From Rhodosorus marinus CCMP1338 (taxonomy: Eukaryota; Plantae; Rhodophyta), in contig JAMWBK010000004.1 of assembly GCA_029953675.1 (NCBI GenBank), positions 496,001 to 560,000 on the forward strand: 64,000 nucleotides of DNA. Direction: 5' to 3'. Below, one piece after another: positions 3,485 through 55,077 of the stretch (position 1 is its first letter; every line of letters begins with the position of its first letter). The notes beneath the pieces were generated by a model, which did no database searches, was not told the origin of the DNA, and saw only the letters and a list, made by a program, of their open reading frames with translations. A program made the translations under genes and the position numbers.

Positions 3485-4071
3485 TCACTTGGCCGGGCAA
3501 GTGAGTCCCACTATGCACTTTGCGACGCCTGAGGTGCTATTTACTTTGCACCTGTCCGGTTGGTTTCCTTGTGGAGTGACGAGGATGTATTCCCCCTTCA
3601 CCTTCACCTGAGTCCTGGAGACAAGGCACATGTCCTTTCCACAGCAACTCTTCGGTGATTCGATTTCATCCGCGCAGATCACGTACTTCCTCTCTGCCAG
3701 CTTCTCCGTGCTCTTGATGGTGTACTTGGCGTTCCCTCGAGGAACTTTACTGCACTTCCTGAAGACGCCAAGCCTCACCTTGGACTTGATATCACCAGGG
3801 AGTTCCACCTTCACTCGAAGACAAAACCTTCCCCTTCCAGTCCTCGTCGTAGTCGTACACAGGGATCCATAACTGTTCCCCTTGGAGTCTCTCAGCTTCT
3901 GACAGAAGTGCTCAAACTCCGCCCGACTGCCCTCATCGATCCCATCTCCACAACTATGAATCTCCCCTTCATGCCTTACTGACAAATACACCCCGCTACT
4001 GAGCAACCCCTTAGCACCAAAACACTCGATCCCAAAATACAAAAAAGTATAAAATAAATCAAAGACTTCAT
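3485..4071 (-). pseudogene. Secreted Cys-rich domain protein with a 1-nt frameshift near the 5' end (pseudogene or homopolymer error)
   Basis: ATG at 4071 encodes a signal peptide MKSLIYFILFCILGSSVLVLRGCSVAG in a different frame from ORF 3485..4042. One extra base, e.g. in the G4 run near 3990, would join them. The Cys pattern matches 37452..38003 and the N-terminal domain of 53362..55077. Confidence 0.65.
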
Positions 4072-4761
4072 TGCAATTTACGTCTCTCCCCGCACCCTTT
4101 GATCATACTCAATAAAATACAATTGCATAAAATTATACCCCCCCTTGTGAAGCTGGCACAATTGCTCCAGGAGTTCCGCCTTCTGCTTGGAGACCGACCG
4201 GCTTTCTCGAGATTCGCCCAAGTCCCCTTTTTTATATCCCATCTCGACCCTTGAACAATTATTCGAAAAACTATTTGAGCATCCGGTTTTCTACTTAAGA
4301 ACTCCCAATGTTCTATAGATACGTATTTTAGGCATAAAATAGAACCTATGTTTTTTATATATTGTTTAGTGGTATAATTATTGAGCTCCCGGGGTTGACG
4401 TCAGCTTCCCTTTTCTGCCCAAATTAGAAACCCATGACGAAATAGGAAAGATTTTAGTATTTGGGAAAAATTATATTCTAATAATAGGATTTTTTTTGCA
4501 CAACCGTTGTGAATATATCGAATTAGAGTTTTTAAGGCAGTATCACCGTAGACGACGAAGCACTGGTTTGGGCATTCACCTGAAGGGGCTTGGAATTCAC
4601 CGTCCGAATAATGGTATGAAATTTTCACTTTACAGTCGAAGAAGCTAAAGGAGTAGTATACGGTATACAACTACTCCTGTTCTTGTCTATACTCTTCTAC
4701 AATCCACAGCTTACGAGCTTCTTGTGTTTGTACAGATCTACATAATCTTAGTTATAGTTGC

Positions 4762-6282
4762 TTAGGCGGCGACGTACACGGGAGCAGCCGTTGGCGCATA
4801 TGTAGGGGCCACTGTTTCGTACGCCGTCTCGTGCTCAGTAGGGTACTCGGTGGCGTCCTCAGTTGGGTACTCGGTAGGGTACTCGGTGGCGTCCTCAGTT
4901 GGGTACTCGGTGGCGTCCTCAGTTGGGTACTCGGTGGCGTCCTCAGTTGGGTACTCGGTGGAGTCCTCAGTTGGGTACTCGGTAGGGTACTCGGTGGGGT
5001 ACTCGGTGGGGTACTCGGTGGGGTACGCGGTGGGGTACGCGGTGGGGTACGCGGTGGGGTACGCGGTGGGGTACTCGGTGGGGTACGCGGTGGGGTACGC
5101 GGTGGGGTACGCGGTGGGGTACTCGGTGGGGTACTCGGTGGGGTACTCGGTGGGCTCCTGAGACGGGTACGGTGTCTCCTTGTGGTCGCACGGCTTCTCC
5201 GAGACAGTCTCATAAGGGGTAGCGGTCTCATAGGCAGTCTCGTACGGGGTCGGAGCCTCAGTCCCATACGGAGTCTCAAAGGGGGTCTCGTATGGAGTCG
5301 CTGTGTGGCTGCAAGGGGTCTCATAAGCGGTCTCGTACGGGGTGGCAGTCTCAGTCTCGTACGGAGTCTCATAGGGGGTCTCGTATGGAGTCGCTGTGTG
5401 GCTGCAAGGGGTCTCATAAGCGGTCTCGTACGGGGTGGCAGTCTCAGTCTCGTACGGAGTCTCATAGGGGGTCTCGTATGGAGTCGCTGTGTGGCTGCAA
5501 GGGGTCTCATAAGCGGTCTCGTACGGGGTGGCAGTCTCAGTCTCGTACGGAGTCTCATAGGGGGTCTCGTATGGAGTCGCTGTGTGGCTGCAAGGGGTCT
5601 CATAAGCGGTCTCGTATGGGGTCGGAGCCTCAGTCTCGTACGGGGTTCCAGTCTCATAAGCGGTCTCGTATGGGGTCGGAGCCTCAGTTTCGTACGGGGT
5701 TCCAGTTTCATAAGCGGTCTCATACGGGGTCGGAGCCTCAGTTTCGTACGGGGTTCCAGTCGCATATTCAGTCTCAGACGGTGTCGGAGCCTCAGTCTCG
5801 TACGGAGTTCCAGTCTCATAGGCCGTCTCGTAAGGTGTCGGAGCATCAGTCTCGTACGGAGTTCCAGTCTCATAGGCCGTCTCATACGGGGTCGGAGCCT
5901 CTGTATAATACGGAGTTTCAGTTTCGTACGGGGTCCAGGTCTCGTAATCGGTCTCATACGGCGTTTCCGTGGGGATTTCTGTGTGATTGCAGGGAGGCGT
6001 CAACGTTGGGTAAGCTGTAGGCGTCGGCTCCTTGTCACACGGAGTGGGAGCGACCGAGTGGCATGGACCATCGGACTTGCACGGACTATCTCCCTCAACT
6101 TCGAGGTTATTGATGATCAAGTTGTCAACGTTCTTGATGACCAGGCTGTCAACGTGAACGTTCTCAATATGCACATCCCGCTCACCATCGATCTCGACCG
6201 GTCCAGTGTATTCCGCCGGCACAGACAGGGCCGCGCCAACGAGCGCGAACAGAACCAAAACTCCAGCAGTAACCTTCATCAT
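4762..6282 (-). CDS. Secreted Pro/Thr/Tyr/Glu-rich repeat (mucin/extensin-like) protein
   Basis: Signal peptide MMKVTAGVLVLFALVGAALS, followed by tandem PYET, PTEY/PTAY and PTEDATEY repeats. This is the only frame with a signal peptide and non-repetitive ends. Confidence 0.82.
   Translation of the reverse strand: MMKVTAGVLVLFALVGAALSVPAEYTGPVEIDGERDVHIENVHVDSLVIKNVDNLIINNLEVEGDSPCKSDGPCHSVAPTPCDKEPTPTAYPTLTPPCNHTEIPTETPYETDYETWTPYETETPYYTEAPTPYETAYETGTPYETDAPTPYETAYETGTPYETEAPTPSETEYATGTPYETEAPTPYETAYETGTPYETEAPTPYETAYETGTPYETEAPTPYETAYETPCSHTATPYETPYETPYETETATPYETAYETPCSHTATPYETPYETPYETETATPYETAYETPCSHTATPYETPYETPYETETATPYETAYETPCSHTATPYETPFETPYGTEAPTPYETAYETATPYETVSEKPCDHKETPYPSQEPTEYPTEYPTEYPTAYPTAYPTAYPTEYPTAYPTAYPTAYPTAYPTEYPTEYPTEYPTEYPTEDSTEYPTEDATEYPTEDATEYPTEDATEYPTEYPTEDATEYPTEHETAYETVAPTYAPTAAPVYVAA
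4835..5960. repeat. Coding minisatellites: 12-bp, 24-bp, 54-bp and 93-bp units
   Basis: gctgcaagggg recurs at 5308, 5401, 5494 and 5587 (93-bp period). ggtggggtactc/ggtggggtacgc 12-mers run from about 4975 to 5150. Confidence 0.95.
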
Positions 6283-9200
6283 GTGCTGTCTTTCAAAACT
6301 CAATAAGTTCACTAGTACTCAATGTATTCTCTTCTCGGCTTCTCTTCTGATAATTTCTAATCCCGGTCTCCAATCCGCTCAGAGTGAAAACCTGATCCTA
6401 TTTATAACTTATTCATCAACCAAGGCGCTCGCTCTTTAGACGAACCTCGTATTCAAACAAAAAGTTGTGAAATTACACGAAATTTCCCTCCCTGACGTCC
6501 TAAACCTGCACTAGGACGATCACAACTCAACTGCTAAAATTGGCCAAGGTGCTGACAAGCCCATTGATCAGGCTATTCTCCCTCCCCAAAATTGCCCTAT
6601 GAAAAATACATTAAAAAACAATATCCCCATAAAAGTACCAAAATACAATAAAACAAATCAAGTGTTTCTAAACTTATTAACCATGCGTCTTTCTCCATTG
6701 GTCAATAGATTACTTTGCCGAATTCTATTTCGCCAGCTTACTGCTGACACCTTGAATTCAAAACATAATTGGTTATCACAATAATTGAATAATGATTTAA
6801 AATGATCTATGCCTTAATTATTGGGACTATTGGGAGATATGTATTGGTTGAGAGCAAGGTCGGCGGTTTTCCTTGAATGGCGGGCGTGGATAGTGTTGTG
6901 GCGGTGGGGCTCGCTTGGGGCCGTTTTTGTGTGATAGTCGTTCAGAAAGTGAAGGCCTTAGGTGGTAGATTTTCTTGATGAGAGAACAAGAATACTGAAT
7001 TTGAATGAGTCAATAGTGTGGCGACGGGGCTTTACTTCCTTACATGGATGACAGTGGGAGAGACTATAGATGGCAAAAAAAGCTGGGGAGGGGGGAATGG
7101 GGCGGGGATTGGGCTTTTTTTTTTCTACTATTGCAAGCGGTGCTGTCATTAGTTGAGGAACTGGGCATTCCGCTGGGGCCCCATGGATGAATTCTTGTAT
7201 TTGGAAGGAAGGGGCTGTTTGCCTCCGGCTAGAAGGCGAGTGGCAAGCATTTCGGACGTCTGCTTAGTTCTGGTCGTGATGTGAGAGGTGTTGCATGCAA
7301 TTCGTTAAGGGAATTATTGAATGAGCGCAGAGTTTTCTTATTCATCGGGATGGAAGAAAAGTGTCGTTTCCAGGGAGCTGTGAGCGTGCGTTTGAATGAT
7401 TGATTCCCTTGTGCGATGGCACTTGCGGACGTCGTCTGCCTCTGGATAAGTGGTTCCAGCAACTCCAGTCCTACTTCGGTTCTCCTTTGCGGATGGTAAG
7501 CAAAAAGTACATAAAAATAAATTCTATTTTATACAAGATGGAATCACATCCTTGATCGGGGAGCCACAAGTCCATCAGTGTATGCCGATCCCTATCCCGT
7601 TTGCTGACAAGAATCGCCCGAGACCAGGAAGTTATCAGTGGAATTTAGTGGGTAACTGCACACATGCTTAGAAAAATAATCGTAACCCAGCCTCTTCTGG
7701 CGTCTCCCTGAAACCATATTGCGCTAAGTACTCAATTTACCTCTTCTCCACCCAGTTTCAACTCGAGCCTAAGTACTCCCCCAAAACGGGGGCCAATTGC
7801 CCCACTCCAAGAACAATGTTCCCGAGCCAGACTTGAATTCATGAAGCAAACTTTCCCTACAGTCAAATTACTGTGATCAAAACGCGTCAATGCGCATCCT
7901 CTTCGCCAACCGCGAAGCTGCCACAACGTCGACGTTCCATTTTTGGGGAAACTGGCCCAGAAAATTCACGAAACCGGCACATTCATCGTACGATGCTTAC
8001 TATTTTACTGTATTAACAATATTAATATCATTTAAAAAAATTTATTAGTCAAATAAACTATACAGTGTCCATTATTACGATTGAACCTTAGAGGACAGTC
8101 TGTCCATTCTGTCTTCACGAACTGACTGGAGATGGTGAGGCTTGTTGTGAGGATAGATGTGGACTGGTGTACGATCATAGACGTAAAGGATACCTCAAAA
8201 TCTTCTCCATGAATTCTAAGGACCCCAGGATGCTTCTTTTCCCCCCTTGCCTTGAGTGTCGCTCACTGATTTGAAAAGTGTTTTGTGTGCGCACAGCCGC
8301 CGTGGGCCACTGGGTTCTGGGATGGGCGCGAGAGGTGGATTTGGCCTTCATTACCGCGAGAGATTTGACGTTTCTATGTGAAATCCTTGCGGTAGGGCTT
8401 TTTGTAACGGGCGAATCCTCGGAAGAGCCTACTTTCCGTCTTGCTCCTACAGGCGACCCCTGGAGGGGCAAGACTCCGTGGAAGGTTACGCATCTTGATT
8501 TCGTGGCCCTCGTCTAGGCCGGAGAGCTTGCGAAACGGCTCGAACCAGCACCAGAATCTGTGTGTTCCAGGATTATCTAAAGGCGTTCTAGTAACATCTA
8601 TTAGAAGATAGCGCAGGCATATTTCCTTGCTAATGGACGTCTACACCTTTGTGAGACAGTTGCGAGAGGGCAGCGAAGTCTGCTGAAGTCCATACTGAAG
8701 TTAGTTCATTATTACCCGGAGCTGATGTTTTCTCTGAAAATTTCGTGTGTGGAGCCACACTGCATACAAATACTTTTCCACTGCACTTGTGCCTTTGGGT
8801 GACTTTTGAATGCTCCGCATGTGCCAGTTGAATCCTGGGAATTGTCCTTTTTGCAGTTAACGTTTCTGTTGGAAACAGGAATCTCGACACCGACCGCCGC
8901 ACACCGCCCGCGTTGTTGATGGGAGAACAAGCCATATGCGTTTCAACTAGTTTTCAGAAGTTTCCTGGGACTGAAAACTGTTGTTAATCAATCGAAAGGC
9001 CCCGGGGAAGTAGGAACAGCGGTGGGAGAAAAGAGGAGAAGATGGGAGAATGAAAGAACTGCGTAAGTTGACAAAAGAACAAAATTCCAAGAGTTCGGTA
9101 GGAAAATTGGTGGGTTGATGACGTATTCTTATCGGAAGAGTGAACACCAGTGCGGGAGTATACCCGTGGGCTCGAATACGACAGCTACGGTATTTGCTCA

Positions 9201-11149: not shown

Positions 11150-11950
11150 GGAGTTCTGCGGTGGAAAGTTTCCTCATCATACTCTCTCGCGATGGTTGGG
11201 GTCTCTCCGAGCCCTGCTCCCTTGGGCGCGGAGCCTTACAGAAAGGAGGGCATTGACAGCAGGCGGGCCTCGAGTTTGCCTGAGCTCAGGCACTTTCTCG
11301 ACGGTGGTGGATCTGCAGGGTGTGTCTGGCACGCAAGTACGTGTCCAGTGACCAGCTTGGTCACCGCCACCGGGGATAAGGGCGCCCTACCGCAGCTCAC
11401 ATAGCGTCTCTGTGCGCTGGAATCGGGGCTGTTTGACGGCGGATGCAAATTTGATGGCGGACAACGTGGCCACGGTGGCCGCCAGACCTCACGGCAGTCA
11501 AAACCAGGGGATCAGTCAATATGCACCTGTCCCGGGACAGGCTAGAGGGCTTCTCTGAATCCCCTCGGGACAGTGCGGATTTTGTTTGTGGAAGGGGGGT
11601 TCCCAACAAGAACCCGTGCTCGGGGATTGGTGGTGACCGAGATGGTCAACCCGCGGGAGCCGGTTTGGGCGTGTGTGAAGATGTCTACCCTCGCTTGGCA
11701 GGACATTCAGCAGGTAGGTCCCATCCAACCCAGGTTAAGGGAAGTGGCCCGAGGGGGTCCTCCCTCGTACTGTTCGGTGGTGAGGCGCGGCACAACGGCA
11801 GCGCGAACAGCTGCAATGGTCCGGTTTTTCCCACCGCGGAGGAGAATGAGGGAAGCTTGGCAGCACTTTTGCAATTTCTTTGGGTGCGCAATGTGCGCCC
11901 GAAGCCCACACGATGGTAGGTCCCGTAAGTGCTGGATTTTAGGCATACCT
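11150..11950 (-). mobile_element. Possible highly degenerate CRE-like RT relic
   Basis: Minus-strand pieces PSCGLRAHI (cf. PSGLRAEHL), ASLILLRGGKNRTIA, EARLLSM (cf. AARLLGM) and SAPKGAG occur in the expected order but in broken frames. Confidence 0.3.
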
Positions 11951-11959
11951 TTGCGGAAT

Positions 11960-12409
11960 CATTGGGCTCCAAGCGCGGGGAGATTGAGGGGAACTCGGCA
12001 ACAGTAACCCCAGTCTGCATAGATGTGGTGGAATACAATGGTACTCTGTCTACTCGTTTCCAGTACTCTGTTCTTCCAGGATATTTGATCCAAACAGCCT
12101 ACTTTGGTGGACATAGGAACTGCTTACAGCAGCAAGTATTCCCGTACAAACGGGTCGAGAAGCTTCCGCAGCCTGCGGTAGCAGTGTGCCAATTCGTTGG
12201 CTTCGAGGAGTTTGATTACCGGCGGAATACGCAGAGGGTTGCTGAGGAGAAACTGCCTCAGCCCAAAGGTCAAAGTCATTAGCGAGCAATCTCCCGGATT
12301 GGGGGTTATAAATACGTTCCCACCAAAGGGTAAATATGGATGCGGTACGAAGAAGGGCCTGAGGCGCTGCCATACAGAACTCTCGTGCACGAATCCAGAG
12401 GAAAAATAA
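11960..12409 (+). pseudogene. 5'-truncated, frameshifted paralog of 16092..16709 and 26653..27264
   Basis: VCIDVVEYNGTLSTRFQYSVLPGY...HRNC...FPY in one frame, and RRNCLSPKVK...GKYGC...GLRRC in another. Small deletions at about 12218 and 12245. No signal peptide. Confidence 0.8.
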
Positions 12410-16091: not shown

Positions 16092-16709
16092 ATGAAGACG
16101 GTGAAGCTGATTACGCTGCTTGTCGCCGTCATAACGATGACCGCGTACGTGGAGGCGGAGAACTACCAGCCGGCCTCCTATTGGATGACCGGCTTCACCG
16201 TTGTTTCTTGGCGTATGTACTTATTTGATGAGCCCGTACCCAACAACTGCATGCCACTCATAGGGAAGGCGAACGCGTGGGGTGCTGAAAATCCATGGGT
16301 CAAAGTCGCCGACGTGTGCATATCTATCGTGACATACCAAGGCGAACTCTCGACTCTTTTCCATTACACGGCTCGGCCAGGATACACAATCGCAGCGGCT
16401 TACTCGGGCGTACATAGAAACTGCTTACAGAAGAAAAAATTCCCCTACCAAACGGTAGCAAAGTTTGGAGAGCTTGGGGAACAGGTTGTGACCCAGATTG
16501 TTCCCTTCAGCGAATATGATTGCCCGGCGGAATATGAAGAGGGTTGCTGCAACAGGAGGAACTGTCTCAGCCCCAAGGTCCGAGCCCACAAGGTTCTCGC
16601 TCCGGAATATACTTTTACTGGGTTCCCGCCAAACGGAAAGTATGGATGCCGAACCGTACGTGGCCTCAGGCGCTGCCTTGCAGACCTACAATGCTTTAAT
16701 CCAGAATAA
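16092..16709 (+). CDS. Secreted Cys-rich domain protein (205 aa)
   Basis: Signal peptide MKTVKLITLLVAVITMTAYVEA. Clear paralog of 26653..27264 (HRNC, FPY, EYDCPAEY..GCCNRRNC, GCRT.RGLRRCLA). Confidence 0.85.
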   Translation: MKTVKLITLLVAVITMTAYVEAENYQPASYWMTGFTVVSWRMYLFDEPVPNNCMPLIGKANAWGAENPWVKVADVCISIVTYQGELSTLFHYTARPGYTIAAAYSGVHRNCLQKKKFPYQTVAKFGELGEQVVTQIVPFSEYDCPAEYEEGCCNRRNCLSPKVRAHKVLAPEYTFTGFPPNGKYGCRTVRGLRRCLADLQCFNPE

Positions 16710-17536
16710 AAGCAATCCAATATTCAACATCGAGGCCGAAATACTCGTTGCTGTACTCGCCAACAATTTTGGAAAGGGAGTTCCACTGTCCAAGACATCG
16801 TGCGCTTAGAGTTCCCTTAATCGAGCCTTGCGAGCACCCCGTCCCCGTTGTTTACAAATGGATCTCATGGGCGCTCGGCTCGAAAGTCATATTGCCGAGG
16901 GTCAGGGAGAATTTCCCCGAGCTGGGCGACAAAATTTCTCACAGAATCCTTACAGAAAGCCAAGAGAACCTGACGCTTAGGGTATTTGCCATTTCATGAT
17001 GGTAAGACCTGCGAACCCTTTGTCGATCGGAATGCTTATGGTAGGGACTACCTCTTCATCAATATCGCATGTTCCCTCGCTGTAAGCGGTTCCTCTACAT
17101 CGCAAACAGGGTGCCTTGCTTTTTTAAAGTCTGTAATATTTTGAGCCTCTAGTTCGACTCTGAGAATTGTGTTCCAACAGACTAACACTCTCAGGGTTGT
17201 TCGCTCTTTGTCTTCCAAGACATACATAGTCTTCGGGATAACTGCTAACCACCACCACCGCTCAACACAACTCAAGTCATCCCGTTGAGCTCCGAAGCAA
17301 GTTTTACGCTCACCATGCGTCGTGTCCTACGCGCCGACACTTTCTACATGCAGGCTCGCTATTGTTCACCTGCAGCTGGAGTAAAACCTCCCTCTAGTCT
17401 GGCCGCTCTCACTGCCCTCCTCCTCATATATCTGAACTAGATACGCGGATTTAGGGAAACGTTCATTCAGATGCAAGCGTTTAAAAAACCCTAATCCTAC
17501 GCTGTTCGGAATAGAGGAGAGGATCTACATACACCT

Positions 17537-17743
17537 GGACTTCCGTTGGTTCTCGTTGGCTTCGGGAGTTGTTCCGCGACCGCCCTGACCGTCTCTCCTC
17601 GTTTTTTACTCGTTTAAGTTTCTTGCTGTGGCGTATGAACGCTGCTTCGATGTTGGAGGCGCGCGATCTTCGTCCCGCCATAGAACTTTTTTCCCCTCGG
17701 GATTTTTTTCTTTCAGTCTCCGATTACACAAATTCATTCATTT
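17537..17743 (+). mobile_element. 3' fragment of RLE non-LTR family C (copy 1)
   Basis: Homologous to the copies at 21.5, 23.5, 24.2, 41 and 51 kb. Encodes the RLE C-terminus (SRWLRELFR...LSFLLWRMNAA.MLEAR) and ends caaattcattcatt. Confidence 0.8.
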
Positions 17744-20914: not shown

Positions 20915-20965
20915 TTTTCTTCAATCACCAAGTTCCAGCGGCTTCAGCCCCGGAAATCCACCAAT

Positions 20966-26652: not shown

Positions 26653-27264
26653 ATGAAGAGCTTGAAGCTGATTACGTTGCTTGTTGCGGTCTTGGCGATG
26701 GCTGCGTACGTGGAGGCGGAGAACTACGAGAACGCCCTCTACTTTATGACCGGTATGCAAGTGAGTTGGATTTTTCTTGTGCACGGCGGACAAGACTGCA
26801 TTCCACTCATAGCCAATATTGGAGCATGGAATTCAAGCAACGGTTTTGAAAAAATCGGCGAGGTTTGTGTAGATGTGGTAGAAGACCACGGTACTCTCTC
26901 GACTCGTTTCCAGTACTCAGTTGACCCAGGATTCTCGATCACACGAGCCTACTCTGGGGTACACAGAAACTGCCAGGTGAAGAGAGTATTCCCGTACCAA
27001 CGGTCTGAGAGGCATCCGGGGGGCACGACGAATGTAACCCAATTTGTTGGCTTCGACGAGTATGACTGCCCGGCGGAGTACCCCCAGGGTTGCTGCAACA
27101 GGAGAAACTGTTTCAGCCCAAAACTGAAGATCGTTCAAGACTCTAGGCCTGAACTTGGCGTGGTAAATGCGTTCCCAGCAGATGACCCTTCGGGTCCGTG
27201 GGGATGTCGTACCATAAGGGGCCTAAGGCGCTGCCTTGCAACTATCTCGTGCCTTGCGGAGTAA
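26653..27264 (+). CDS. Secreted Cys-rich domain protein (203 aa)
   Basis: Signal peptide MKSLKLITLLVAVLAMAAYVEA. Paralog of 16092..16709. Confidence 0.87.
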   Translation: MKSLKLITLLVAVLAMAAYVEAENYENALYFMTGMQVSWIFLVHGGQDCIPLIANIGAWNSSNGFEKIGEVCVDVVEDHGTLSTRFQYSVDPGFSITRAYSGVHRNCQVKRVFPYQRSERHPGGTTNVTQFVGFDEYDCPAEYPQGCCNRRNCFSPKLKIVQDSRPELGVVNAFPADDPSGPWGCRTIRGLRRCLATISCLAE

Positions 27265-37451: not shown

Positions 37452-38003
37452 CTAGTTATCGGTCGAACATGTTAGCTTTGTGGAGCATCCTACTGCATTG
37501 TCGGTTATCAAGGCACACCTATCAGCTTCGGGTTTCAGGGTAGCACGGAAGTTTCCCCAACCCACGTGAATCTCAGCGGCCACGCATACGGTTGAGTCGC
37601 ACGAAAACGAGTCTGCATTCGAGATTTCTTCGAAGCAGAAGTCAACGGTCTTGGTGCTTATGGGGTGTTTAGCCACCCGTCTGAACTGGAACGCTTTATT
37701 GGAACTTCCAGTATGTCTTCTGCAGTCTTCCTTAACCCCCAACCGAAGCTTGCGGATACCTCCGTAGGTACTATGGACCTTGACACGGAGGCAATGCTTT
37801 CCGTTCACCATCACCGATTTCGTGCACATGTTGCCCATCCTCTCCCTGAAATAGTCCACAAGCGTCACACAATACCCGTCTACATGTACATACGGTCTAG
37901 TCTCATCGCTTTTACTATTCCGAATTGCTGCCTTGGTTGGAAGTCCAGCAACCAATCCCAGACCAACCGCGAAAACACAAATGGCTAGGAAACCGAACTT
38001 CAT
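37452..38003 (-). CDS. Secreted Cys-rich domain protein (183 aa)
   Basis: Signal peptide MKFGFLAICVFAVGLGLVAG. The Cys pattern C..G.MC..CLRV..GV..DC..C.EEI..C...C..C..C..C is shared with the genes at 3.5 kb and 55 kb. Confidence 0.83.
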   Translation of the reverse strand: MKFGFLAICVFAVGLGLVAGLPTKAAIRNSKSDETRPYVHVDGYCVTLVDYFRERMGNMCTKSVMVNGKHCLRVKVHSTYGGIRKLRLGVKEDCRRHTGSSNKAFQFRRVAKHPISTKTVDFCFEEISNADSFSCDSTVCVAAEIHVGWGNFRATLKPEADRCALITDNAVGCSTKLTCSTDN

Positions 38004-40785: not shown

Positions 40786-40959
40786 CATTGAGGGGTACAG
40801 ACTTAGAGCTAATACTTGTTTCTTCTTAGCCACGGCGAGAGTCCACCCCACGCACAAACAGCCGTGTTTCATTCGTGGGAATTCACGTTTGTGTGTTTCT
40901 TCGGTTTGTTTTGTTTTGTCTCCCCGGTTTCGAGTCGCCGTTGTCGGTGAAACACATTC

Positions 40960-41200
40960 AATGAACGAATTTATTTAATCGGAGGCTGGAAGAAAAAAAA
41001 AAGAACGAGGGGAAAGAAAACACTAAGCGCGGGGAAGACCACGCGCCTCCAACATCAAAGCGGCCGCGTTCATCCGCCACAGTAAGAAACTTAAAAAACG
41101 CGTAAACAATGAGGACAGACGGTCAGGGCGTTCGCGGAACAATTCCCGAGGCCAACGAGAACCAACGGAATCCATAAACCCAAAACACTCCGCATTCAAT
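40960..41200 (-). mobile_element. 3' fragment of RLE family C (copy 5)
   Basis: ECFGFMDSVGSRWPRELFRERPDRLSSLFTRFLSFLLWRMNAAALMLEAR. Confidence 0.82.
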
Positions 41201-44271: not shown

Positions 44272-46293
44272 ATGATGAAGGTGATTTTGTTGTACCCTTT
44301 GGTGTGTTTGGTTGTGCTGAGGATCTGTAGTGCTGCTGGTGTGAGGGGGTCACACAAAAAGTGGGATGCAGACAAACCGATTCGATACAGTTTTGACAAG
44401 GACGTGATTCCGTCGGCGAAGGATAGTATTGTTGCCGCGTTGGAGCGGTTCGAGAGAGATACTTGCCTGGAGTTTAAGGAGGGCAAGTCGAGCGGGAACC
44501 ACATCTTTTTCACGTCGAAGAAATCTGAATGCTACTCCGCGAGGGTTGGATTCCGAGGTGGACGGCACATTGTTTCCGTCCACCCATACTGTTACGGAGG
44601 GTATCCCCTTCTGTCACAGGCGCTATATCAACTTGGCAAGGTACTTGGTATGGTCGAGACGCACAGCCGGCCCGACAGGGACGATCATATTAGCGTGAAC
44701 AAATCCAACGTCCTCGTGAGGTTTCGCTCACTGTTCTCCAAGGTGCGGTGGTCGGACTATGCGGATGAGGGTGTAGGCTTTGACCGCAACTCAATCATGA
44801 TCTTCGAACAGCGCTTTCTCTCCAGAAACGGTAAGAAGACCTTCGCGATGAAAAACAGCGCTGTCTCACGTCCAGCCGCCAGCAAATGGCTCAGCAAATC
44901 CGATGTCAAGCTTCTCAACCGAATGTACGATTGCCCAGCAAAGGCAGAGAAGGGCAGGTTCATCTTCCGCTTGAAGCGAGCCAGGAACTGGCCCGCCAGG
45001 GCTCGGGTGAAGGTGACGGCGGTTGACTCCAAGGGCAAGAGGCACGTCAAGCAGATGACCGTAAAGAGGGATCCCAACACGCCTCGCTTCTTCGGCTACA
45101 AATTTGACTTTGGGAAAGGGAGATTTCAGTATTTCCGAGTCGCCGTTCTCAACAACGACATTGCCAACCCGCAGCAGATCTTCCTGGAGCAGCTCTATAC
45201 TATCTCAGAGGGTGATACGTACTTCCTCCTGTGTCAAGCTCCTGGAAGCTGCAACACGAACCTCAGGTTCAAGACGGAATTCAAGCCGCTGCCCGGCGGC
45301 GGTAGCCGTTGTGATCCCAATCCGTGCAAAAACGGTGGCGAGTGTAAAGTAGCAGGTGGCTCATCATACACCTGCAAGTGTCTCGCAGGTTTCTACCGGC
45401 AAAACTGTGAGCTGATGTGGGGGGAGCTCATTGTCACTGCAGTTCGCGGTCAGAACCTAGACCATGACGATTCGGATGATGTACTTGACCGACGGGTGAA
45501 CATACCGGATCCCTACGTGCAGGTCACCGCAACAAACTTCAACAACACCGAAGTCGTTCGGAAGAGCCGAGTTGAGAGGAACAACGCCAATCCGGACTGG
45601 AAGGGCGAGAGACTCTACCTCGGTATGAGCTCCTGGCAAGAGATAGAGGTGAAGGTGCTTGACTTTGAATCAGACCCAGGCAACGTCCATGAGCACCTCG
45701 TGCCAAGAAGAAGGTTTCATCGTACTCCCAGCTACGGCGAGTCCACGATCCTCCTGTGCGGTTCTAACCCGGGCTGCACGCGATTCGTAGAGATCAAACT
45801 CTCTTTCAAGCCAGTTGCACCTCCGCCTATCTGCCCAGTTGGTTTCACCGGCTTCAACTGCGACATACCGTTCGGAGTCCTGGACGTGAAAATCTTCAAA
45901 GGCGTCGGTCTACCTAATGATAGTGGGAACCCCCTTAATCCCTTCGTTGTGATCACCGCGAAGAACGAGCGGTGCCTTCAGTTCTCAAAGGAAACGTCGA
46001 CAAAGTTCGGAACCACAAATCCCGTCTGGGATGAATCGTTCCAGTTCGGGAAGGAAACATGGACAAGTGTCGCGATCAATGTCATGGCTGAGGATGTGCT
46101 TGGAGACGGTGACATACAAGTCCTTCCCACCCAGGAGTTCTTCATCAAACCCGTTCCCGAATTCAAAATCGTCTTCAGGAGGAGGGTCTGCATATCACCT
46201 CGGAACTGTACACAGTATGTGGAGATTGAGATATCCTACAAAGAGAGACTTCAGCCCGACGTAGTCTCCGACCAGCTATATGCTTGTGCTTGA
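44272..46293 (+). CDS. Secreted astacin-like pseudo-protease with C2-EGF-C2-(short Cys link)-C2 (673 aa)
   Basis: Signal peptide and astacin fold with the zinc motif replaced by YQLGKVLGMVE while RPDRD is kept. EGF CDPNPCKNGGEC...CLAGFYRQNC. Three C2-like domains. Confidence 0.88.
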   Translation: MMKVILLYPLVCLVVLRICSAAGVRGSHKKWDADKPIRYSFDKDVIPSAKDSIVAALERFERDTCLEFKEGKSSGNHIFFTSKKSECYSARVGFRGGRHIVSVHPYCYGGYPLLSQALYQLGKVLGMVETHSRPDRDDHISVNKSNVLVRFRSLFSKVRWSDYADEGVGFDRNSIMIFEQRFLSRNGKKTFAMKNSAVSRPAASKWLSKSDVKLLNRMYDCPAKAEKGRFIFRLKRARNWPARARVKVTAVDSKGKRHVKQMTVKRDPNTPRFFGYKFDFGKGRFQYFRVAVLNNDIANPQQIFLEQLYTISEGDTYFLLCQAPGSCNTNLRFKTEFKPLPGGGSRCDPNPCKNGGECKVAGGSSYTCKCLAGFYRQNCELMWGELIVTAVRGQNLDHDDSDDVLDRRVNIPDPYVQVTATNFNNTEVVRKSRVERNNANPDWKGERLYLGMSSWQEIEVKVLDFESDPGNVHEHLVPRRRFHRTPSYGESTILLCGSNPGCTRFVEIKLSFKPVAPPPICPVGFTGFNCDIPFGVLDVKIFKGVGLPNDSGNPLNPFVVITAKNERCLQFSKETSTKFGTTNPVWDESFQFGKETWTSVAINVMAEDVLGDGDIQVLPTQEFFIKPVPEFKIVFRRRVCISPRNCTQYVEIEISYKERLQPDVVSDQLYACA

Positions 46294-46730: not shown

Positions 46731-48123
46731 TGACAACTACGCTATAAAGGGACAGATGTCCATTGCATAAGGAACTCTGCCTCGCATTGACGCTACTGCT
46801 AGGCCCAAAAAGGTATCAGTCGAAACTGGTCTCGGTGGAGAGAGTGGCCTGCCTCGGAAGTATTTCACTGATCACCCCTTGGCCGTACCTCGCGCGTTTG
46901 CAACTATTCAACTCTAGTTTTGTGTTGCTTCTCCGGTGAGATTCTTGTATGTGATATCTGTCATCGTGTTGGCTCACGTTCCCTAGACGGCTGTAGGTTT
47001 CCAAGCCTGGCCCCTGTTGGTTGAGGATTTGATGACGAGAATCAACCATGGCCGTTGAGGTGCGTAATGGCCGTAATTATGAGAGGATAAACCGTTTCAA
47101 ATACATGCTTAACGAAACTTTGAAGTCATCTCATGACCCAGTGCCTTCTCAAGCGATACCTACCCGGCTACGATGTCAACCCTGCCATGGAAACACGTCG
47201 GGCAACGGTATTATCGAATAAACATCCAAAAACAATATCAAACATTCAAACCATTGGATAGTAAATTAGATAAATGCATATTTTAGAAATATGTTCTCTA
47301 TTAATTGGATAAACTCATTGCATTGAGCCAATAATACTTCTCAGTGAATGGGTAGTGATTAAAAATGATTATAGGTGGAATACTCTTCATAAAACAAATA
47401 AAATTAAACCTATTTCAAAGATCTCCAATAGAAAATTGCGTTGACTAATATATTCCGGAGAACACATTTTACGATTAATTGGATTGGTTGTAAGTGATAT
47501 TTATTGGATATGATTTATTGAGGTTTTGGAGAAGCCCTAAAGGGCTCCTCGGTGAGTGAAGCGGGTTTGGTTTAGAGCGGCGTGGCTGTGGTCGGTCCAA
47601 GGTGTTTGTAGGGAAGATAGATATCTCACATGTCTTAACATTGGCATTGTATTGTTTTAGATGGCTTTTGAATGTTCCTGTTAGCCAATCTGGGCTTTTT
47701 GTGGTGTTTGCCCTGCCATGGCAGCCCGGGCGCCGGCGTACCCGGGTCAATGAAAAAACCGCACAGACTTCCGCAGCTGAGCGTTTTACAGATGATGCAC
47801 ACTTCAATTTTCAGTTCGGTGAGCATGGATGTATTTCTACGCTGGTCAGTTTGAAGAAAGGGCTGCTAGCTGCTGTCAGCTAATCCCCCCGGGCTCTTGG
47901 AAAACACTCAGCCGGACATAGTGGATTGCCACGGGACTACTTGTCTCGATATGGGAAGGACGGTCATCGGATTCTAACTAAACTAATGTATCGCGCCAGC
48001 TGTTTAACTAACTGCGTTCAGACAGTATATAGCCAGACAGTGGCCGACGGGCATACCGGCCTCAACCCGGAGTCCCCTCTGGTTATATCAACAGACAACG
48101 CTTGTCTTCTGATTAAAACAAAG

Positions 48124-50181
48124 ATGAAGTCAAGAAGCTCTTTGGTGATAATTGCCTCCGTCGCGGTTGTTTTTTGCGCTGGTGTGTGCTCAGGAGCAGT
48201 GGTACGAAGCGAATCGAAGAAATGGGACGTGTCCAAACCAATTCCATACCGGTTTTCGAACTCTGTGGACGCCGTGACCAAGTTCTATGTAAGGGAAATA
48301 TTGACGCAGTTCAACTACACCTGTCTAAAGTTTGAAGAGGACCATGAGGGAGTCAAGAAGGACCATGTGTACTTTATCCAGGATAGAAAGCAGTGTTTCC
48401 AAGCGAAAGTGGGTTTCCGCGGGGGTCGTCACATCGTTTCAGCGAGCGCGGTATGTCCGGGTGGGTACTCAACTACCACTCACGCGCTTCATGAGCTGGG
48501 ACACGTTCTGGGAATGTACAACTCAGTCAATCGTCCTGATCGGGACGACTTTGTTGATGTGAAGAGCAAGAACGTCATCAAGGCGTTTCGTAGCCATTTT
48601 TACAAAGAGTCGTGGGAAGACGTCGCAAACGAAGGCCTCAACTTCCCCTTCCGTTCCATCATGACGATGGATGAATACTGGCTCTCAAAAAATGGTAAGA
48701 CAACGGTGTTTCCTAAGAAATCTGAGGACACGCTCGAGTCGAGGTCGAACTTAAGCGCGTCCGATGCGCGTCTGCTGAACCTTGCATACAACTGTCCGAG
48801 TCCAGCTGCTTCTGGAAAGTTCATCTTGAAGCTTAAGCGAGGTAGAGGCCTCCCGAAGAAGGCCTATGTCGTAGTAACGGTTTATCAACAGGACGGAGTG
48901 ATCCGCAGCAAGGTCTTGAAAGTGAAGTCGTCAGAGCCCTCACAGAGGTACTTTGGCTACAAGCTGAGCTTTGGAGTTCAGACGTTCAAGTACTGCCGGG
49001 TGAAGGTCGTGAAAGGGACTGGTCGCAACGCCAAGGCTATCTTTCACGAGCAAGTGTTCCATTTTCCGCAAAATGCAGACAGTTACCACAAACTATGTGA
49101 GGCTCCGGGCGACTGCGACAAGCACCTTCGATTCAAGATCGAGTTCCACGAAGAGGACGATGGCCTCCCTCCCGGCGATCAAGATGGCAGATGTGCTAGG
49201 AGCCCGTGTCAGAACGGCGGCGTATGCGAGAACACACCCCTTGGCGTTCATTCTTACCACTGCCATTGCCCACCGGGATTCTTCCGGGACGTCTGTGAGC
49301 TTCCTTTTGGCGAGCTGCTGGTGGAGGTAGTCAAGGGCCACAACCTCCCCAATCTGGATGAGTCGCAGCCTGGTGAGGGACCGGCGTCGGATCCGTTCGT
49401 GTCCGTCTTCGCCCAGAACGTGAACGGAACTGTCGTCAAGAGAGTCAGCAAAATTGTGAGAGATAGCAACAACCCGAACTGGGGCCGTCAGCTACTAAAG
49501 TTTGACTACAGCTCCTGGCTTGCCTTTACGCTCGATGTCTATGACTATGATGAGGAGGGCCCGCCCAGACTCCTCCTTCCGAGACGCTCGTTCGAGATCA
49601 CTCCGACGGCGAGGAACGGAGGGAAGAAAATCTACAAGGCCTGTGGAAAGGATCCAGAGTGCTCGAGTTACGTTGAATTCAGAGTCTCCTACGAGGAGAT
49701 TCCGTTCGAACCCCCTCTCTGTCCTGTCGGGTACATGGGTTACAACTGCACCGTGCCCTATGGACAGCTTGATATCAGAGTAAAGGGGGGACGTAACCTC
49801 ACCAACCTGGATGCTTCGAATGATGCACTATCAGACCCCTTTGTGCAGATCACCGCCGACGGTTCCTGTTTGACTGCGTCTGTAAAAGAGAAGACTACGC
49901 ACAAACCCGACACAGCGAATCCAGTATGGGACGAGACGCTCAGATTCGGAACCGACAATTTCGATAAGATCAAGGTGAAGGTTTTGGATGCCAACAAGGG
50001 GGGTAAGACTGATGTAATCATACCGAAAAAGACGTTCAAAATCTTTCCTCAATCTCCAGACGCACGGACGAGGCTCCTCAGAGTGTGCAAATATGACAAC
50101 TGTGCTGAGTATGTAGACCTCGAGGTCACGTACATGGGGCTCCAACAGCCCGATATCTTCCCTTTACGGGCATGCCAGTAG
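48124..50181 (+). CDS. Secreted astacin-like protein with C2-EGF-C2-(short Cys link)-C2 (685 aa)
   Basis: The in-frame ATG at 48124 gives a signal peptide (MKSRSSLVIIASVAVVFCAGVCSG). Motif HELGHVLGMYNSVNRPDRD, EGF CARSPCQNGGVC...CPPGFFRDVC, and C2 domains with SDPFV. Confidence 0.88.
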   Translation: MKSRSSLVIIASVAVVFCAGVCSGAVVRSESKKWDVSKPIPYRFSNSVDAVTKFYVREILTQFNYTCLKFEEDHEGVKKDHVYFIQDRKQCFQAKVGFRGGRHIVSASAVCPGGYSTTTHALHELGHVLGMYNSVNRPDRDDFVDVKSKNVIKAFRSHFYKESWEDVANEGLNFPFRSIMTMDEYWLSKNGKTTVFPKKSEDTLESRSNLSASDARLLNLAYNCPSPAASGKFILKLKRGRGLPKKAYVVVTVYQQDGVIRSKVLKVKSSEPSQRYFGYKLSFGVQTFKYCRVKVVKGTGRNAKAIFHEQVFHFPQNADSYHKLCEAPGDCDKHLRFKIEFHEEDDGLPPGDQDGRCARSPCQNGGVCENTPLGVHSYHCHCPPGFFRDVCELPFGELLVEVVKGHNLPNLDESQPGEGPASDPFVSVFAQNVNGTVVKRVSKIVRDSNNPNWGRQLLKFDYSSWLAFTLDVYDYDEEGPPRLLLPRRSFEITPTARNGGKKIYKACGKDPECSSYVEFRVSYEEIPFEPPLCPVGYMGYNCTVPYGQLDIRVKGGRNLTNLDASNDALSDPFVQITADGSCLTASVKEKTTHKPDTANPVWDETLRFGTDNFDKIKVKVLDANKGGKTDVIIPKKTFKIFPQSPDARTRLLRVCKYDNCAEYVDLEVTYMGLQQPDIFPLRACQ

Positions 50182-50918
50182 CGTGGTTAGAGTGGTTGAC
50201 GATTGATGTAAAACAGCAGTCCTATATTCATGTATTCCTTCAAAATCCGTCAATCCTACTTCATTTTTCAAAGTCGGATCCGCAAAACCACAACGCCAAT
50301 CGATGCGTATTTGTAGTCCTCGCGCAAACGTTCAGGCACTAACCACCCCGCGTTAAAAACCACAATCCTACCCACGCTTGGTCCTTACGACCCTAGTGAT
50401 CCGAAAAAACTGCGAAACGCTCCTAACGCCGACGGACACCTCTGCGTTATTAGCCCAAGTTCGACCCACTAAATCTGGCCACGTAAGGAACTCTTTTCTA
50501 AGTTCAATCAATATTTGACCTTGATTGGCCAACAACTTTTCCAATCAACCTATAGATGTCCTTACGTCCAGACTGAAGTCCAATCAAGTGTACCCACGAT
50601 CCTTCCTCTAGTAGGTCCCTATGGGGAACGGACGAATCAACCGACCCGACCCCTGTTGCAAGTACTGACGAATACCGCAGTCGGTGTATTCGAGCCCACG
50701 AGCAACCGTTGCGCACTGATGTCCACCCCTCCGGGATAAACTCTTAGTCAACCCACCAACTATCCTTTCGAAACTCTTGGATTTATTTTGTCGAAATCTG
50801 ATATTTTCATTTTGTATCCCTTTTTCTGCTTCTTCCTTCGTCTACCATACTACTACTTCTTCCGCTTCAGGCTATGCTAAAAACACTACCACTACTTCCC
50901 CAACGGACTTGTCTTTTA

Positions 50919-51200
50919 TTGAATGGATTTGTTTAATGGAGACTGAAAAAACAAAAGGCGAGTGGACAAAAAGACTACGCTCGGCGAAGATCGCGCTCCT
51001 CCAACATAAAAACAGCGTTCATACGGCAGGAAACTTGGACGGGTAAACACGACGAGAGATGGCCAGGGCGTGCGCGGACAACTCCCGGAGCCAGCGAGAA
51101 CCAACACACTCAATGAGCAGAGGTACCAGGCGATGAGTTAAAGCCGAAGCGCGAATATCTGGGGAAGACAAAGCCCCTGCATTTTACTTCTTTGCGACGT
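50919..51200 (-). mobile_element. 3' fragment of RLE family C (copy 6)
   Basis: Collinear with 23494..23800. Confidence 0.82.
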
Positions 51201-51690: not shown

Positions 51691-53361
51691 TGAACAAATT
51701 TTGTTCTCCTCGTCGTACCGCAGAACCATTCTGGATGCTGAAGCCGTTGACGCGGACTCTCGGGGGGGGAAATTGGACCGGGCCACCCAATCAATCATTC
51801 ATTTGCCATTTTGACTGACATAGATTTTCATACGATTTGGGACCTTTTCAATGTGTTCAGCTCTTCAAGGTATGCTAGCAAACCCACCCATTCCTCCTAC
51901 TCCGGATGCCCTGAGCCTGAGCATCTTTCATGGAGAACTTCGTACATGTTGGAGGGCACGAATCAGTCGCCCATAACGGCTCAAAATAACAGCGATCACT
52001 CCGGTTGGGGAGCATGAGTGCGGCCGTACTCCAGGGCGGGCCCTCAAAACCTCCAGAACCTCCTTTCATGGAGCTAAGCTTGTGGGGTCTAGATCCGTTT
52101 GGACCCTTGTGGAGCCGCGAAAACTACCATAGGCCTCGGAGCAGGGCGCAGATACGGCCGGTAAAGCAAGGTTCCTGCCCACAGCCCCGAGGCTCTTCAG
52201 CCATGAATAACAATGGAACTTCGGGTCGATTCTCTCTATTGATAAATAAATCCGATATTGATAAATCAATTTTTCTGTCGGGTTCACGTAATCTAGATTT
52301 ATTATCCTTAATAAAGAAATTTTTAGAAGCGACAGCTCTTAATACCCTGAATTATTTTTGTTAATGATATTACTAGAACAATCTGTGTCGTAATTAGAAT
52401 ACTTTCGTTGTCTAGGTATAAACCAGGTGTACGTTTAGGAACGATTCATTAGCTGGGACACTTTCACGGCACATTGTGAAAGATGGGACGCAGTGAGTGG
52501 TGTTTGGGGCTCAACGGCGAACCCAATGCGTACGTACGTCGGTAGCTGGGTATCTAAAGAAATTAGTATGCTGCGGTATAGAATTCGTCAGCGGGCGAGC
52601 ATGATGTAACCTCTTTCCGTTTTCTGTTTGCAAGGTCGGCGATATGCACACTTTTTGGAAGTATAACCGATTCCGCACATTGGCTTGCCAATCATACGCG
52701 TTAATCCTGTGGCCGATGAGGACCCCGGAACAAAATTCAGATCAGAGCACCTTGGTAAGATTTGGGAGGTGTAGCTGGCTTGCGGTGAATGAAGCGACGC
52801 TGCAGACTTTGCTGATATCTCACTACTTTGGACCCATCGTCATCGCTCTTGGGGCCTTAACATGGGAGGGAGATTCTCGATTATCACTCCGTTCTTTTCC
52901 CCCTTTAGTTTTTACAATGAGAAATCAAAGCAAAAGACAAAAACTTCGAAGTGGGCCAGAGGCAGTGTAGTAAGTGGAACGTCATCGTTTCCTTCATCCG
53001 ACCACCGAGACTATTCTCGAGCGGGAAGGATCCAAACGTTTGAACAAAAAAACAATTCAGATTATGCAGGGAACTAGAATACAGTCCGTCCACCCTTCCT
53101 GTACACGACGAGCAGCACGAGTTAATGCTCTCTGGGAGAGCCCGGACCCGCCGTGGCCGGAGTGCAGTGACAGAAGTAGGATCCTATAGCGGAATTCGCA
53201 AATCAAATCCATTAAATTACATCTCTTTTCAAGATACTCTTCTCATACCTGATCCATTTTTATACCAGATCAAGGTAGTCTTCACTTGTCAAAGGCGTCA
53301 GCTTAGGCAGTAAGGCCGGCCTGTCGAGGCCGGAAGCAGCGGGAGCTTCCTGTGTTTTCAC

Positions 53362-55077
53362 TTAAGGCTCAGGGACAAATTTTTCAATGTTCACGAAGGC
53401 ATCTTCGGTACGACCACCATAGGCAGAGTCGTATCCTTGGCCGCCGTTGACGGTATCGACGTCTGGGCCTCCGCCTATGTAGTCGTCGTAAGCACCGCCA
53501 TATAAACTATCCTCTCCTTCGCCACCGAAGAGGCGGTCGTCACCGGCTTCACCGCGGATTACATCGTTCCCTCCTCCTCCGGCGACGATGTCATTTCCTC
53601 CTCCGGCATACACGAGGTCGCGCCCGTCGCCGAGTGACACGTCGTCATCGCCGGAGCCAAGGACGACGTTGTTGCTTCCTGAGAGATCTACCACCGTATT
53701 ATTCCCATCGTAGTCAACTATATCATCGTTTCCTCCTTCTCCGTTGAGCAAATCACTTCCTTTGCCGCCGTCTAGATTATCGAAGCCGGCTCCTCCGAAG
53801 ACCGAGTCCTTGCCCTCGCCTCCGTTGAGGTTGTCCGATCCGTTTCCGCCGGAGACGATATCGTTGCCGTATCCGCCATCTACAAAATCCGCACCATTCT
53901 CTCCGTTCAAGATGTCGTTTCCTGACTCCCCGTGGACGAAATCGGCGCCGGTGCCAGCGTTGACTAGGTCATCACCTGAACCTGCGTAGACTGTGTCGAC
54001 CCCGGATCCGAGGGTGACAGTATCGTCCCCAGAACCGAGCACAATATTGTTGTCTCCATACATATCGGTGACGGTGTTATGCCCAAGACGGTCCACAATA
54101 TCGTCATCGCCTTCTTCGCCGTTAAGCTGATCTTGTCCCTGTCTGCCGTCCAGCAGGTCAGCTCCTGCACCACCTTTCAGTCGATCATAGCCAGCTCCCC
54201 CAATCAATCGGTCAGAGTGATCCCCTCCATCCAGACTGTCATCTCCTACACCGCCGTCCAGTTCGTCCAGTCCCTTATCACCGCTAAGGATATCTGCACC
54301 ATAACCACCGAAGACGGTATCGTGTCCGTGGCCAGCGTACACGACGTCAGAGCCTCCGCGCGCGTTGATCGTATCGGCGCCGCCGTAAGCATAGATTAGG
54401 TCGGCGCCGTTGGTTCCTATTATAGTATCGGAACCGTTGGTTCCTCGGATGAGGTTGAGACATCTCAACTTCAGCGGACATATCCTCTCATCTCCCTTTG
54501 ATGAGCATCGGAAGTCATTGAGCTCAGCGACAACCAGGTTACCAGCGCTATTTCTGTACTGAATCTCGGAGACGAGACATAGCGTTTCTTCGCAGCAGTC
54601 GGTCTCGGACTTGATTTCAGTGGGACAGATGTCAATCTTTACCGGGTGCTTGTAGTCGCCTGTGCTCCGCCTTTTAGAGAAGCGACTAGCATCTGTTGGG
54701 AGGTTGTCGCACTTGTGAAGTCCGGTACGAAGCCTCAAGTCTTTGATCGTCGTGTCGGTGAGGTAGAACGTCAACCGAAGGCACCTCTGGGAGCTGAATC
54801 GACGTTTGTTAGATGTACATACCAGTCCCACAGGTCTACCCGTGCTTCGCGTCACCATAGTTCGACAATAGCGGGTGAAATCCGCTCGAATCTGTCTCCC
54901 AGCCTCTGACTGAAACAAAATGAACGCTCCACATGTCGATGGTGCTTCCTGCTCCTGTCTTACCGCTGTACCAACCTTACCCGCCTTACCACCCCGCACC
55001 TCTCCCGACAGAACAAACAGGAGCCAGATAGCTCCCCACATCCATCTCTTCACAAACGCAAATCCTCCTTTCCCCAT
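53362..55077 (-). CDS. Secreted Cys-rich domain plus RTX (hemolysin-type) Ca2+-binding repeat protein (571 aa)
   Basis: Hydrophobic N-terminus MWGAIWLLFVLSGEVRG, a ~140-aa Cys-rich domain, then many GGxGxDxLx nonapeptides. No introns. Confidence 0.9.
   Translation of the reverse strand: MGKGGFAFVKRWMWGAIWLLFVLSGEVRGGKAGKVGTAVRQEQEAPSTCGAFILFQSEAGRQIRADFTRYCRTMVTRSTGRPVGLVCTSNKRRFSSQRCLRLTFYLTDTTIKDLRLRTGLHKCDNLPTDASRFSKRRSTGDYKHPVKIDICPTEIKSETDCCEETLCLVSEIQYRNSAGNLVVAELNDFRCSSKGDERICPLKLRCLNLIRGTNGSDTIIGTNGADLIYAYGGADTINARGGSDVVYAGHGHDTVFGGYGADILSGDKGLDELDGGVGDDSLDGGDHSDRLIGGAGYDRLKGGAGADLLDGRQGQDQLNGEEGDDDIVDRLGHNTVTDMYGDNNIVLGSGDDTVTLGSGVDTVYAGSGDDLVNAGTGADFVHGESGNDILNGENGADFVDGGYGNDIVSGGNGSDNLNGGEGKDSVFGGAGFDNLDGGKGSDLLNGEGGNDDIVDYDGNNTVVDLSGSNNVVLGSGDDDVSLGDGRDLVYAGGGNDIVAGGGGNDVIRGEAGDDRLFGGEGEDSLYGGAYDDYIGGGPDVDTVNGGQGYDSAYGGRTEDAFVNIEKFVPEP

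Follow-up and report, generated by a model that had tools for sequence, protein, structure and literature searches.

What are the Cys-rich secreted proteins that recur in a transposon-rich stretch of the nuclear genome of the unicellular red alga Rhodosorus marinus CCMP1338? The stretch, in the following called the window, comprises 64 kb (bases 496001-560000 of contig JAMWBK010000004.1, assembly GCA_029953675.1). A first-pass annotation, made from the sequence alone, had proposed that an unassigned Cys-rich domain is used six times in it, either as a stand-alone protein or fused to RTX repeats. Here we ask whether these copies are indeed one module, how far the module is distributed and what it might do. 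The six loci appear to represent an R. marinus-specific family of secreted, disulfide-rich, all-beta modules, which most likely serve as building blocks or adhesive parts of the cell coat or mucilage; we put the probability of this reading at roughly 55%.

Six copies of the module in the window

A six-frame scan of the window with hidden Markov models (HMMs) of the family returned exactly six module loci, the next best match having an E-value of 0.06. All six copies were found where they had been placed before. They fall into an A-type and a B-type with three copies each. An HMM combining both types matched five loci almost completely (94 to 137 bits) and a pseudogene near 12 kb as two fragments (42 and 22 bits). 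The combined HMM has about 165 positions and includes the framework of cysteines C1 to C12.

The first A copy is a stand-alone gene on the minus strand (3485..4071) with 12 Cys, a mature domain at about 3488-3979 and the highest score with the combined HMM (137 bits). The second, also stand-alone and on the minus strand (37452..38003, 183 aa), starts with the signal peptide MKFGFLAICVFAVGLGLVAG and has 10 Cys in its mature part, C1 and C7 both being replaced by Ser. The third copy forms the N-terminal 209 residues of a 571-aa fusion protein (53362-55077, minus strand), for which the GenBank assembly calls a gene with that product. The head of this protein (54451..55077) consists of a signal peptide (54991-55077) and an A-type domain with 12 Cys (54451-54990). 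It is followed by the RTX region (53362..54450, aa 210-571), which contains 25% Gly, 17% Asp and no Cys, matches PF00353 in 15 stretches (E 9.9e-54) and comprises 20 nonapeptides of the form GxxGxDxUx at aa 212-526. None of the other five window copies carries such nonapeptides. In their alignment the A copies share 28-31% identity and 26 invariant columns including the cysteine framework, and they detect one another within the window by tblastn (E 7e-9 to 1e-3). The motifs described earlier for this type, CLR(V/L), C-x2-EI, CC-x4-C and C-x(8-10)-C-x5-C, are present. Two spacings had to be corrected slightly, the first reading C-x(11-12)-G-x2-C instead of C-x(13-15)-G-x2-C and the second G-x(3-4)-C instead of G-x3-C.

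Two intact stand-alone B genes, about 49-52% identical, are located on the plus strand. They encode proteins of 205 aa (16092..16709, signal peptide MKTVKLITLLVAVITMTAYVEA) and 203 aa (26653..27264, signal peptide MKSLKLITLLVAVLAMAAYVEA), each with 10 Cys. The motifs xxVC, SGVHRNC, FPY, GCCNRRNC and C-x8-C-x5-C that had been reported for the B copies were all recovered. The B-type pseudogene (11929..12409, plus strand) is split into two frame fragments (11929-12279 and 12182-12406) matching the B HMM at positions 45-118 (94.8 bits) and 129-182 (62.8 bits). It has neither a start codon nor a signal peptide, lacks the N-terminal 44 or so HMM positions, changes frame somewhere from about 12216 to 12245 and carries LL at the position of the conserved CC.

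The locus 3485..4071 is not a single gene frame as previously assumed. Its signal-peptide ATG at 4071 (MKSLIYFILFCIL...) is out of frame with the open reading frame (ORF) of the domain (3485-4042). Compared with the contiguous, expressed orthologue of another strain (MMETSP transcript P0009), the window is one nucleotide short between 4032 and 4031. Since the assembly is Nanopore-based (PMC10250338) and the site lies within runs of T and G, the gap may be an assembly error; the frame break at 4025-4040 is either genuine or due to a homopolymer misread by Nanopore sequencing. The GenBank model of this gene (P0008, NDN08_002051) skirts the break by means of an upstream exon and consequently has no signal peptide. 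This skipped signal peptide is one of two annotation problems exposed by our analysis, the other being an untraceable 'Pherophorin' label on two paralogues, to which we return below.

A and B copies belong to one family

The comparison of A and B copies from the window alone was not significant. Aligning their profiles with hhalign gave E-values of 0.067-0.078 at a probability below 1%, a score equalled by 5 of 200 column shuffles, and tblastn between the types gave E-values of 1.1 or higher. Taken by themselves, these values would be compatible with two unrelated families sharing a cysteine spacing by coincidence, and the link between A and B is therefore solid only through paralogues located elsewhere in the genome. 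These were obtained by an exhaustive HMMER search of 1.84 billion representative proteins with a four-sequence A profile (E up to 1e-3), yielding 23 proteins and about 20 further paralogue clusters that bridge A and B. Word-indexed searches with single A or B proteins or with a three-sequence A profile had returned only self-matches, one orthologue and a few B paralogues.

An HMM built from 26 A-type domains matched six B-type proteins with 28.9-41.3 bits over HMM positions 35-165; the best of 3000 shuffled B sequences reached 13.1 bits and reversed sequences at most 7. Extended in this way, the A profile aligned with the B profile over 126 columns at 96.7% probability and an E-value of 3.4e-10 (hhalign). 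In BLASTP the B proteins matched the bridging paralogues P0011, P0024 and P0026 with up to 57 bits, and these paralogues are themselves retrieved by the A profile from the 1.8 billion proteins at E-values of 1e-15 to 5e-5. Thereby the extended HMM, hhalign and the bridging BLASTP matches have already refuted a merely coincidental similarity, to which we assign next to no probability. By sequence comparison, all six copies are homologous and represent one module, the B group being the sister of a 'GEGCCN' subgroup of the family. The notion of one domain, which could not be sustained from the window copies alone, holds once the genome-wide paralogues are included, the subgroup at 16 and 26 kb then aligning with the other copies by profile.

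Distribution and architectures of the family

Every genuine match in the exhaustive search originated from R. marinus, either from its genome or from MMETSP transcriptomes, in agreement with the lineage-specific expansion suggested before. Within the proteins covered, the family is thus specific to this species. It comprises at least 18 genes in the genome of strain CCMP1338 and, when all strains are included, about 30 sequence clusters. One candidate from the dictyostelid Synstelium (P0025) was discarded as a partial, spurious match to a repeat protein. Scans against Pfam with the six copies, with 31 members and with three consensus sequences of the family found only PF00353 (RTX). The module thus has no match to a named family in the Pfam copy used, with the caveat that UniRef labels two paralogues as pherophorins, and it merits an entry of its own.

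Several architectures are found. The module occurs alone, in pairs connected by a short Pro/Thr linker (P0011, P0022, P0028), with a long Pro/Thr/Ser tail (P0026) and in combination with RTX repeats (PF00353 in 10 of the 31 members), P0010 even containing two module-RTX units. The use as stand-alone or RTX-fused domain was hence borne out by the Pfam scan and the architectures of the paralogues. The Pro/Thr-rich linkers of the tandem modules are probably O-glycosylated. Transcripts in the MMETSP data cover orthologues or paralogues of the stand-alone A and B genes (e.g. P0007 for the 16092 gene), an RTX-fused paralogue of 525/540 aa (P0021/P0034) and paralogues with degenerate RTX-like tails. 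The junction between domain and RTX repeats, C-x-N-[LI]-I-x-G-T-x-G-D-D, is conserved in the 53362 protein and in RTX-fused paralogues on other contigs, indicating that the fusion is old and did not arise locally.

Secretion, cysteine pairing and predicted fold

Every intact copy begins with a classical signal peptide, so that the module, as proposed earlier, is predicted to be secreted by the ordinary eukaryotic route. It is about 150-165 residues long and contains 12 cysteines in its canonical form, which would allow six disulfide bonds. A table of cysteine losses in 30 non-redundant domains supports the assumption of a disulfide-bonded module: cysteines were lost solely in pairs. C4 and C6 were lost together in 7 of 7 cases, in two separate lineages, and C5 and C9 in 4 of 4 cases. 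C1 and C7 are both missing from the 37452 copy and C2 and C3 from one paralogue. Since paired loss points to disulfide partners, we infer the four pairings C1-C7, C2-C3, C4-C6 and C5-C9. The B proteins lack C1 and have a new cysteine (YDC) eight residues ahead of the CC pair, which may be a replacement disulfide partner.

The beta-rich character that had been suggested is reflected by the AlphaFold model of the 3485 domain, in which nine beta strands and no long helix are predicted at modest confidence (predicted local distance difference test, pLDDT, 65; predicted template modelling score, pTM, 0.64). The model of a B protein is mostly beta as well and poor (pLDDT 53). Foldseek searches of the PDB with these A and B models, of modest and low confidence respectively, gave no significant relative (best E 0.07, template modelling (TM) score at most 0.32). 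Sandwiches resembling superoxide dismutase or immunoglobulin domains appeared in the Foldseek list at noise level (TM about 0.3). A profile search of PDB sequences gave nothing significant either (best E 0.43).

Selection and local history

The 3485 gene and its orthologue of another strain differ with a synonymous rate (dS) of 0.36 and a ratio of nonsynonymous to synonymous rates (dN/dS) of 0.27, indicating purifying selection. Together with the signal peptides, the paired loss of cysteines, the all-beta model and the transcripts, this ratio supports a functional extracellular beta module.

The first-pass annotation had envisaged ongoing duplication, loss and shuffling of the module in this region. 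Loss is evident from one pseudogene and one frame break. Local duplication and shuffling could not be confirmed: the A copies, at 24-31% identity, are not mutual closest relatives, each having a closer paralogue on another contig than within the window, and the closest paralogue of the 26653 gene (71-78% identity) is located on contig 8. Nucleotide similarity among the B copies is limited to the coding sequence and about 45 bp upstream, and beyond the B coding regions no recent segmental duplication was detected in the window. The common RTX junction described above likewise speaks against local shuffling. Judging from these relationships, the window copies are old, divergent paralogues and not recent local duplicates. 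No RTX remnants were found in the window downstream of the stand-alone copies, which argues against these genes being recently truncated fusions.

In the contig 8 paralogue of the 26653 gene (P0003; L003 10001-10757, contig JAMWBK010000008.1) a segment of about 20 residues is duplicated internally (...SDSRPDLG... twice). The gene range annotated for P0003 exceeds the product; the model therefore probably includes an intron or an error.

Possible function

A location in the extracellular matrix or cell coat and a binding or adhesive function, as considered in the first-pass annotation, are suggested by the architectures and the neighbouring genes. The module would form an N-terminal globular head, presented alone, in tandem with Pro/Thr linkers or ahead of RTX repeats, and this Cys-rich head may bind matrix polysaccharide or other matrix proteins. 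RTX repeats fold only at high calcium, outside the cell. By analogy with this established biochemistry, the RTX part of the fusions could fold to a rigid beta-roll only after secretion, in the calcium-rich seawater, so that its folding would be calcium-gated. Three genes for astacin-EGF-C2 proteins with signal peptides and one for a Thr/Pro/Tyr/Glu repeat protein, also with a signal peptide, are neighbours in the window that would fit a matrix.

Several points weigh against this interpretation. No relative of known function was found by sequence or structure, which leaves architecture and neighbourhood to speak for the matrix role, and gene neighbourhood is weak evidence in eukaryotes. Confidence in the structure models is modest for A and poor for B (pLDDT 53). 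Moreover, secreted Cys-rich families that diverge rapidly and lie in transposon-rich regions are typical of defence and effector proteins, too. The family might accordingly be a secreted arsenal for defence, allelopathy or interaction with microbes, its RTX fusions acting on membranes or surfaces of other cells. The extreme divergence of the paralogues (24-31% identity), their expansion within one lineage, the transposon-rich setting and the pseudogene would suit such a role, and the best-known carriers of RTX repeats are exoproteins of bacteria, cytolysins among them. However, the 53362 protein has no hydrophobic pore-forming or acylation region, only a short tail following the RTX repeats, selection between strains is purifying and not diversifying (dN/dS 0.27), and the Pro/Thr-linked tandems, like the neighbouring genes for mucin-like and protease proteins, are easier to reconcile with a matrix; we therefore regard an arsenal as improbable. 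Slimmer still are the chances of a carbohydrate-binding domain, similar to lectins or carbohydrate-binding modules (CBMs), that serves calcium-dependent polysaccharide-modifying proteins in the manner of the RTX 'R-modules' accompanying bacterial mannuronan C5-epimerases. A predicted beta sandwich, the combination with RTX repeats and the mucilaginous walls of Rhodosorus cells (PMC10250338) would be in line with it, yet none of the 31 members has a catalytic domain, and neither Pfam nor PDB gave a CBM or lectin family resembling the module.

The building-block reading would survive if the module were related to the pherophorin domain (PF12499/DUF3707), at great distance and perhaps with a circular permutation. 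The module would then be of a known kind of matrix module, its matrix function being unchanged and only its novelty reduced. This relationship is raised by UniRef, which names two paralogues, P0026 (A0AAV8UNN6) and P0031 (A0AAV8UUH2), 'Pherophorin domain-containing protein'. We could not reproduce the label. At E-values up to 10, PF12499.13 (gathering score 24 bits) matched none of the 31 members and none of the three consensus sequences, and the positive controls from Volvox, phV2 and phI, were recognized at 1.1e-60 and 1.1e-42. We also built profiles from 9 and then 21 pherophorin domains of Volvox and Chlamydomonas (PMC9818292, Table S1), which were compared with the family by reciprocal HMMER searches, with shuffled and reversed sequences as controls, and by hhalign in collinear, tandem and permuted arrangement. 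In hhalign the probability was at most 1% for both profiles in all arrangements. Of 32 sequences, exactly P0026 and P0031 ranked first and second with the 21-sequence HMM, at 9.7 and 5.5 bits; all scores were thus below 10 bits, and shuffled sequences reached 12.8. In many members the match falls into the same two pieces with their order exchanged, positions 4-50 of the pherophorin profile corresponding to the C-terminal and 80-130 to the N-terminal half of the module. HMM scores show a slight surplus over those of shuffled and reversed sequences, forward sequences outscoring reversed ones (p about 0.01). The domain sizes are similar (155-170 aa), and a Pro-rich linker connects two domains in some paralogues. 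On the other hand, the cysteine patterns are not collinear, and the window genes encode one domain each and lack a Pro-rich region, thus differing from the two-domain organization with a hydroxyproline rod. The PDB searches with the module turned up no solved pherophorin structure. On balance we consider the relationship doubtful, albeit with enough in its favour to be taken seriously.

A further-reaching interpretation would be a fold without any described relative, joined to an RTX beta-roll of probably bacterial origin and routed through the endoplasmic reticulum, giving a calcium-triggered, self-assembling cell coat. This would be the first eukaryotic RTX-based matrix described, independent of the pherophorins of green algae. 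We offer it as a speculation that is more probably wrong than right by a clear measure.

To our knowledge, the proteins in the cell coats of unicellular red algae have hardly been characterized, and literature searches on RTX or pherophorin proteins in Rhodosorus or red algae gave nothing relevant. The family provides candidates for it, namely a defined module with a putative disulfide map and three architectures, encoded by at least 18 genes in one small genome. The export of RTX repeats by a eukaryotic signal peptide is unusual and offers a natural test of calcium-gated folding in eukaryotic secretion. New are thus a solid domain family without a Pfam entry and an unusual eukaryotic RTX fusion, which the earlier observation had understated.

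Genomic setting of the module genes

The window contains few genes and many transposons. Two long ORFs on the minus strand (28068-31208, 1046 aa, and 33912-37001, 1029 aa) encode reverse transcriptases of retroelements. A gag/protease remnant (19051-21264) is flanked by 300-bp direct repeats (19051-19357 and 20966-21264) that are 90.6% identical. These retroelements sit between genes of the Cys-rich family. A dispersed repeat of about 200 bp, present in six copies on both strands with 76-85% identity (17536-17746, 21458-21663, 23491-23709, 24254-24395, 40953-41190 and 50913-51200), may be a small non-autonomous element.

The three astacin (PF01400)-EGF-C2 paralogues, all with signal peptides and on the plus strand, are located at 1570-3207, 44272-46293 and 47926-50181. 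In the 44272 copy YQLGK takes the place of the zinc-binding HExxH, and in the 47926 copy the third zinc-binding His is replaced by Asn. Because of these changes in the zinc site, at least two of the three astacin-like proteins are probably catalytically impaired. Directly adjoining the 3485 gene, an ORF on the minus strand (4762-6312) encodes the mucin-like protein, which begins with the signal peptide MMKVTAGVLVLFALVGAALSVPA and continues with Thr/Pro/Tyr/Glu repeats (TPYETAYET..., EYPT...) over some 400 residues; at 4841-5922 the tandem repeats have periods of 12, 54 and 93 nt in the DNA. At the far end of the window, genes for a glutathione S-transferase (59583-60251, plus strand) and an alpha-type carbonic anhydrase (60703-61128, minus strand) are unrelated to the module family.

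Comparison with known systems

With the secreted Cys-rich families of other microbial eukaryotes the Rhodosorus module shares a small disulfide-stabilized domain, high divergence of paralogues, clustering in transposon-rich regions and the presence of pseudogenes. There is, however, no kinship in sequence or structure. Furthermore, Rhodosorus is free-living, selection between strains is purifying, and the fusion partners, RTX repeats and Pro/Thr linkers, point to a structural role.

Like bacterial RTX proteins, which include adhesins, S-layer proteins and other exoproteins exported by type I systems, the 53362 protein and at least nine paralogues contain long runs of GGxGxDxUx, for which calcium-dependent extracellular folding is to be expected. 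The RTX part is a genuine PF00353 region. In contrast to the bacterial proteins, the gene is eukaryotic and nuclear, and its product carries an N-terminal signal peptide instead of the C-terminal type I signal. Its Cys-rich passenger module was not found in bacteria in the search of 1.84 billion proteins. The hallmarks of type I secretion are absent: no genes for an ATP-binding cassette (ABC) transporter, a membrane fusion protein (MFP) or an outer membrane protein (OMP) are located near the 53362 gene, the neighbours encoding astacin, reverse transcriptase, glutathione S-transferase and carbonic anhydrase. The 53362 protein is hence not a substrate of bacterial type I secretion.

The pherophorins, matrix glycoproteins of Volvox and Chlamydomonas, resemble the Rhodosorus family in their secreted Cys-rich globular domains of about 150-170 residues and in their large lineage-specific expansion. 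Some Rhodosorus paralogues combine two domains with a Pro-rich linker, too, and the proximity of secreted metalloprotease genes is analogous to the expansions of pherophorins and matrix metalloproteases in volvocine algae. The Rhodosorus module differs in having neither a PF12499 match nor significant profile-profile similarity and in a cysteine pattern that is not collinear. The six window genes encode one domain without a hydroxyproline-rich rod, RTX repeats occur in many Rhodosorus members and in no pherophorins, and the host is a red instead of a green alga. Should the faint pherophorin signal be true, a matrix module so far regarded as peculiar to volvocine algae would be older than the divergence of red and green algae; should it be false, the family would represent a convergent matrix design.

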